A stretch of 64,000 nt of DNA from Scyliorhinus canicula (lineage: Eukaryota): assembly GCF_902713615.1 (NCBI RefSeq), contig NC_052162.1:110511811-110575810 (forward strand), read 5' to 3'. The position numbers and the translations under genes are program-made. The notes beneath the pieces were generated by a model. It saw nothing but the letters and a program-made list of their open reading frames with translations, was not told where the DNA came from and did no database searches. Of this stretch, positions 41,558 through 42,650 are shown piece by piece. Positions within the stretch are counted from its first letter, which is position 1, and every line of letters begins with the position of its first letter.

Positions 41558-42650
41558 AGATGCTCCCTGGCCCAGTTTCTATTCATCCTCCATTAACAGA
41601 TGCTCTCCGGCCCAGTCTCTATTCCTCCTCCATTAACAGACGCTCCCCGGCCCAGTCTCTATTCCTCCTCCATTAACAGACGCTCCCCGGCCCAGTCTCT
41701 ATTCCTCCTCCATTAACAGACGCTCCCCGGCCCAGTCTCTATTCCTCCTCCATTAACAGACGCTCCCCGGCCCAGTCTCTATTCCTCCTCCATTAACAGA
41801 CGCTCCCCGGCCCAATCTCTATTCCTCCTCCATTAACAGATGCTCCCCGGCCCAGTCTCCATTCATCCTCCATTAACAGACGCTCCCCGGCCCAGTCTCT
41901 ATTCCTCCTCCATTAACAGACGCTCCCCGGCCCAGTCTCTATTCCTCCTCCATTAACAGACGCTCCCCGGCCCAGTCTCTATTCCTCCTCCATTGACAGA
42001 CGCTACCCGGCCCGGTCTCTATTCCTCCTCCATTAACAGACGCTCCCCGGCCCGGTCGCTATTCCTCCTCCATTGACAGACCATCCCCGGCCCAGTCTCT
42101 ATTCCTCCTCCATTGACAGACGCTCCCCGGCCCAGTCTCTATTCCTCCTCCATTGACAGACGCTCCCCGGCCCGGTCTCTATTCCTCCTCCATTAACAGA
42201 CCATCCCCGGCCCGGTCTCTATTCCTCCTCCATTGACAGACCATCCCCGGCCCAGTCTCTATTCCTCCTCCATTGACAGACGCTGCCCGGCCCGGTCTCT
42301 ATTCCTCCTCCATTGACAGACCATCCCCGGCCCAGTCTCTATTCCTCCTCCATTGACAGACCATCCCCGGCCCAGTCTCTATTCCTCCTCCATTGACAGA
42401 CGCTGCCCGGCCCGGTCTCTATTCCTCCTCCATTGACAGACCATCCCCGGCCCAGTCTCTATTCCTCCTCCATTGACAGACCATCCCCGGCCCAGTCTCT
42501 ATTCCTCCTCCATTAACAGACGCTCCCCGGCCCGGTCTCTATTCCTCCTCCATTGACAGACCATCCCCGGCCCAGTCTCTATTCCTCCTCCATTGACAGA
42601 CGCTCCCCGGCCCGGTCTCTATTCCTCCTCCATTGACAGACACTCCCTGA
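41558..42650. repeat. Homogeneous 40-bp VNTR, 27 copies
   Basis: Unit CGCTCCCCGGCCCAGTCTCTATTCCTCCTCCATT(A/G)ACAGA; CAT recurs every 40 bp from 41591 to 42631. Confidence 0.98.

Follow-up and report, generated by a model that had tools for sequence, protein, structure and literature searches.

The ZNF-B locus

The small-spotted catshark, Scyliorhinus canicula, has a finger-only C2H2 gene, ZNF-B, on the minus strand of the stretch of DNA analysed here (64,000 nucleotides, referred to as the window). The features of the gene and of its upstream side are, in ascending coordinates:

39078-39325, minus strand: in-frame TAG (39323-39325), then two more intact fingers and a tail
39326-40063, minus strand: ZNF-B open reading frame, 246 aa, 8 fingers, starting MEKPWKC
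40064-40340, minus strand: decayed zinc-finger leader, stop 13 codons ahead of the start, homologous to the ZNF-A leader
40572-41511, minus strand: older, degenerate tandem array of about 15 units of ~63-66 bp, CpG o/e 0.34, high-copy words
41552-41557, minus strand: donor-like GTAAGT hexamer within a degenerate, shortened 28th unit, exonic side TCT
41556-42647, minus strand: 40-bp minisatellite, 27.3 copies, G/A-rich gene strand, one four-codon ATG...TAG frame per unit
42648-42900, minus strand: unique CpG-island-like core, presumed ZNF-B promoter, CpG o/e 1.05, two GCATGCGCA boxes, GC skew switch
42806-42821, no strand: ETS palindrome CTTCCGCCCGCGGAAG, the sole one in the window
42900-43150, minus strand: proximal, degenerate part of a ~60-bp repeat with ATTGG (reverse CCAAT) boxes in its units
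43150-44505, minus strand: Penelope-type retroelement fragment within the CCAAT-box repeat, ORF 43419-44702, GIY-YIG-like tail
44505-44660, minus strand: distal three units of the ~60-bp CCAAT-box repeat

In translation, ZNF-B shows a stop, 12 codons and then a MEKPWKC-type first finger. The exact protein is recorded nowhere but in assembly GCA_902713615.2, as an ORF-sized gene that carries no exon information; PMC13200729 assigns this accession series to the small-spotted catshark assembly sScyCan1. Among the sequencing runs compared with the window, X1, X2 and X15 behave as low-coverage DNA, intergenic parts being covered evenly at a depth of about 3-7 in X1 and X2, and X20 is a true RNA run (oligo-dT, 15 million reads). 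The TAG at 39323-39325 stands where the paralogues carry the canonical H-Q-R linker, and a plus-strand G at 39325, giving CAG, was present in an X2 contig (39272-39568, depth 4.3, single-copy) and in an X15 contig. The reference individual may carry a nonsense allele here; alternatively, the two contigs could derive from a near-identical paralogue.

Each unit of the ~63-66-bp array downstream of the minisatellite contains a donor-like CCA/GTGAGT and an acceptor-like CTTCAG/G, about 40 nt apart, together with a (GA)n tract. Depth in the DNA contigs rose to 375 at 40517-40663, as opposed to about 5 in neighbouring sequence. Variant copies of this array from elsewhere were read in X20, in the same orientation as the finger-exon reads. 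A derivation of the 40-mer from the neighbouring 63-66-mer by shortening was considered too. The local alignment score of 21 was reached by 53 of 300 shuffled units and by 6 of 272 control regions, and the collinearity of the two units was dropped as a claim because it is not significant.

Structure of the 40-bp array and its micro-ORF

Tandem Repeats Finder (TRF) returned the array at 41556-42647 with a period of 40 bp, 27.3 copies, 94% matches and 0% indels. Its units stand head to tail, within the ~10-100 bp range and at high identity, and the array is therefore a minisatellite. A search of the 64-kb window with the 26-nt core of the unit gave 27 minus-strand matches, all of them within the array, where 0 were expected in shuffles; no match was found outside the array. 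The initial annotation had described 27 tandem micro-ORFs, and both TRF and the reading of the units in register on the minus strand agreed with that description to the letter. The sequence ATG GAG GAG GAA TAG is present in 24 of the 27 units, and two further units have GAT as the third codon but keep the TAG. The unit with its ATG at 41873 carries GAT and has TGG in place of TAG, so that the frame stays open for 27 codons more, up to a TAA, and the stop is kept in 26 of 27. The weak GTTAAT or GTCAAT hexamers reported in the internal units were likewise seen, at the position matching the GTAAGT of the downstream edge of the array.

The array falls into two sub-domains. Its upstream half is built of mixed unit types, with a three-unit (120-bp) pattern present twice, and the downstream ten units are of a single homogeneous type. 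Both flanks resemble degenerate partial units, the downstream one being a shortened 28th unit of 33 bp that includes the GTAAGT. A mixed upstream half, ten uniform downstream units and decayed flanks are together the usual trace of unequal exchange and slippage.

That the length or the sequence of the array is an artefact of assembly, i.e. a mis-expanded or collapsed repeat, is extremely improbable. The array is too long to be spanned by short-read contigs, and its internal depth was patchy in all three DNA-like runs. However, both junctions were confirmed by independent X15 contigs (40672-41636 and 42612-42756), X2 contigs matched the variant-specific internal pieces 42372-42435 and 42532-42592 at single-copy depth, and the unit variants follow an ordered pattern that does not look like noise. 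One letter, at 42562, differs in the short-read contigs of other samples, which bear out the junctions and some unit variants but give no unit count. Words of the array and of the promoter occurred only in runs of one organism, and the runs of a second organism matched only words of the wider stretch; on this ground the array could be species-specific, for which the distribution of words is a weak hint.

The most widespread variants among the units are CCGG to CTGG, the commonest (19 units), and AGCG to either ATGG or AGCA, and each of them loses a CpG. The CpG o/e of the array is 0.76, compared with 0.34 in the next array and 0.2-0.4 in the background. As this ratio has stayed high, the array should be either very young or located within the unmethylated island, the usual place of first exons. 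Across the array, from the ETS palindrome onward, the G skew of the gene strand is strong (+0.5), such as is found on the downstream side of many CpG-island start sites. The predicted RNA fold of the array was no better than that of shuffled sequences (z = 0.02), and no Rfam family matched in the window.

The expectation for the micro-ORF was derived from 20,000 shuffles of the unit. An ATG occurred in 54% of them, an ATG with an in-unit stop in 25% and a frame of at most four codons in 10.6%, and uniform random 40-mers gave the same percentages. As the 25% of shuffles with an ATG and an in-unit stop show, the micro-ORF is no more than chance would give in a single founding unit, an accident copied by amplification; start-stop frames in tandem units call for caution, because roughly one random 40-mer in four has such a frame by chance. 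When the 27 units are compared column by column, 2 of the 15 columns within the frame are variable, as opposed to 11 of the 25 outside it (Fisher p = 0.08), and start and stop are thus not kept significantly better than the rest of the unit. The frame is without any CpG, and the excess of variation outside it is largely CpG loss. The context of the start codon has a T at -3, which is weak, and a G at +4, which is good.

Presumed promoter core, putative donor site and transcript evidence

The stretch at 42648-43140 has a GC content of 0.56 and a CpG o/e of 0.89 and is a CpG island by the usual thresholds (GC >50%, CpG o/e >0.6, >200 bp). Two GCATGCGCA boxes lie at 42663 and 42875, and three were counted in the window where 0.25 would be expected. 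The ETS palindrome at 42806-42821 is perfect (CTTCCG-CCCG-CGGAAG) and sits exactly where the GC skew changes sign; a search for bacterial-type promoters and terminators, irrelevant here, did no more than flag it as a stem. Upstream of the palindrome, no divergent partner gene is visible. From the palindrome and the skew switch only, transcription would start at about 42800. The core was at single-copy depth in the DNA contigs, and no paralogue of it was found in the window. As in the initial annotation, the array lies between the presumed promoter and a donor-like site, with the two GCATGCGCA boxes and the palindrome upstream of it and GTAAGT at its downstream edge.

On the other side of the core, the ~60-bp CCAAT-box repeat is split by the Penelope-type insertion, and very high read depth was recorded at 43016-43300, at the end of the retroelement fragment. 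The same ~14 nt (CCAATTGGTTGGAG) appear at both sides of the insertion (44505-44528 and 43135-43160), and this pair could be a target-site duplication or merely a repeat unit of the insertion site.

The consensus donor placed at 41557 in the initial annotation stood in part. With G at 41557, the site reads TCT/GTAAGT, with an intronic hexamer that matches the 9-nt 5' splice-site consensus perfectly and an exonic TCT that matches it poorly. By an approximate 9-nt position matrix, it scored 1.33 bits, a value equalled or exceeded by 234 of 3723 minus-strand GT sites (6%). The hexamer itself is not enriched: it occurs 18 times in the window, where 22 would be expected. Downstream of 41557, before the start codon is reached, there are 12 better sites, mostly the CCA/GTGAGT of the 63-mer array. 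From the promoter core to 41557, on the other hand, the matrix gave no donor scoring above that at 41557, and TCT/GTAAGT is thus predicted to be the first usable donor downstream of the core and the palindrome.

These predictions bear on the proposal that transcription starts at about 42800 and that the whole array lies within a first exon of ~1.2 kb spliced at 41557, so that the 27 micro-uORFs throttle translation or trigger NMD according to their copy number. The absence of a better donor from the core to 41557 makes this proposal self-consistent, and it gains from the CpG-island core, the ETS palindrome and the GC skew switch lying just upstream of the array, from an ATG with G at +4 in every unit, each followed by a stop (TGG in one unit), and from one sense-oriented X20 read on the array. 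However, the micro-ORF is at chance level and conserved no better than its surroundings, the exonic triplet of the donor is poor while better sites follow downstream, and the first exon of ZNF-A, judging by its sequence, appears to be short, its donor lying near the promoter. Besides, translation would be all but lost if 27 AUGs preceded the main start in a first exon of 1.2 kb, which argues against an exonic array in a working gene; the reference ZNF-B allele, however, has a premature TAG.

In X20, roughly one read in sense and three in antisense orientation fell on the 1.1 kb of the array, none fell on 42575-43015, the presumed exon start, or on 40811-41398, and no splice joint from 41557 was found. 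The unique flanks of ZNF-B at 38900-39046 and 40370-40516 were at depth 0 in the same run, and the X20 reads that fall on its finger exon and leader differ from it as paralogues do, with 1472 of 1584 reads fitting only in part. ZNF-B was silent in X20, and for this reason the run says nothing on its splicing or exon plan, but it does show that there is no independent transcription of the array in that sample. Words of the array had no match in sequencing runs recorded as RNA. Taken with the evidence from sequence, an array that forms part of the first exon and acts through its micro-uORFs is improbable. The stronger form of the proposal, that the array lies in the mature 5' leader of ZNF-B, that unit number sets translation or NMD and that unequal exchange makes it a heritable, stepwise dial on dose, is more improbable still and was given very little credence.

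Origin of the array and related systems

The reading preferred here, at a probability of roughly 0.6, is that the array is a young, locus-specific, GC-rich minisatellite at the downstream edge of the ZNF-B promoter island, with incidental micro-ORFs. One stretch of about 40 bp at the downstream edge of the CpG-island promoter would have given rise to the array, which would have grown in place by slippage and unequal exchange. The four-codon ATG...TAG frame would be an accident of the founding unit that was copied 27 times, without selection for an upstream reading frame. The primary transcript probably includes the array near its beginning, within either intron 1 or a long exon 1, and if ZNF-B is affected at all, this would follow incidentally from the length and base composition of the array, not from a tuned dial. 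The CpG content and the G skew from the ETS palindrome onward fit a position just downstream of the start site. We infer this position, as well as the origin of the array in situ and its neutrality.

The same composition is open to a different interpretation, in which the array acts at the level of DNA as an extension of the promoter island, either as 27 identical protein-binding modules or as an R-loop-prone, G-skewed stretch that would hold the island free of methylation or determine its chromatin state, and its length affects transcription. The drop of CpG o/e from 0.76 to 0.34 right after the array and the gene-strand G skew of +0.5 beyond the palindrome would suit such a role, as would the CCAAT-box repeat that borders the core opposite the array and shows this promoter to be built of repeats. 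The units also contain purine-rich GGAGGAGGAA and TGACAG-type sequences, which we take to be candidate binding motifs. However, these matches are short, the changes CCGG to CTGG, the commonest, and AGCG to AGCA are CpG transitions that fit methylation-driven decay, and the high CpG may simply reflect youth. Precedents for a role of this kind are the ZNF558 VNTR (bioRxiv 10.1101/2020.08.18.255562) and the cases covered by a review of promoter VNTRs (PMC12776774). All in all, action at the DNA level appears rather unlikely, and the array is most likely an ordinary promoter-edge minisatellite in a repeat-rich shark genome.

In its arrangement the array resembles promoter VNTRs. Known examples of these are MNS16A, INS and MAOA-type repeats, in which the number of units can change the density of binding sites. 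They belong to the promoter-proximal or 5' GC-rich minisatellites of vertebrate genes (see also PMC5438627 and the review PMC12776774). The catshark array shares with them head-to-tail units of 10-100 bp, a strand-asymmetric G richness, ordered variants and a position on the promoter side. Unlike them, it comes from a shark, and its unit is without a match elsewhere in the window.

The ZNF558 VNTR switches a zinc-finger gene on or off by copy number, and it lies downstream of the gene, has units of 7.46 kb and acts via the size of heterochromatin and a lncRNA (bioRxiv 10.1101/2020.08.18.255562). Common to both cases are a tandem array beside a zinc-finger gene and a proposed heritable control in cis by length, whereas the catshark array is upstream of its gene, has 40-bp units and was proposed to act via translation. 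The comparison with leaders of the GCN4/ATF4 type concerns the micro-ORFs. Those leaders have few, distinct and conserved uORFs in a proven mRNA, and as in them, serial short upstream frames could lower and tune downstream initiation. The catshark frames differ in being 27 near-identical copies, with conservation not beyond neutral. Mouse L1 monomers, finally, form the monomer-array promoters of retroelements. Like them, the array consists of tandem units in CpG-rich DNA on the 5' side of a transcription unit, but no retroelement body follows it and its units are much shorter.

No described case of a minisatellite with uORFs as its units turned up in the literature searched, which is not evidence that none exists. 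If the array proved exonic and polymorphic in length, it would provide a clean natural case of copy number tuning the translation of a transcription factor. Irrespective of this, it is a likely length marker.

A comparison with paralogues carrying a single unit had been suggested together with the initial annotation, but the window contains none, as the promoter of ZNF-A is unrelated and ZNF-C is of a different type. The stretch at 31660-31990 is CpG-rich and ends in GCCATCTTG/GTAAGG, a YY1-like box abutting a donor, and is likely to be the ZNF-A promoter with a short first exon; its sequence bears no relation to that of the ZNF-B promoter.

Two other repeats of the window were recorded. At 52438-53269, a 416-bp unit is present as two head-to-tail copies that are 100% identical (TRF score 1664), and the pair either arose by a very recent duplication or is an artefact of assembly. 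At 18666-19131 there is a long G-rich, low-complexity tandem tract with GGGGCGGACC-type units and a GC content of 0.64, adjoined by a GCATGCGCA box at 19169.
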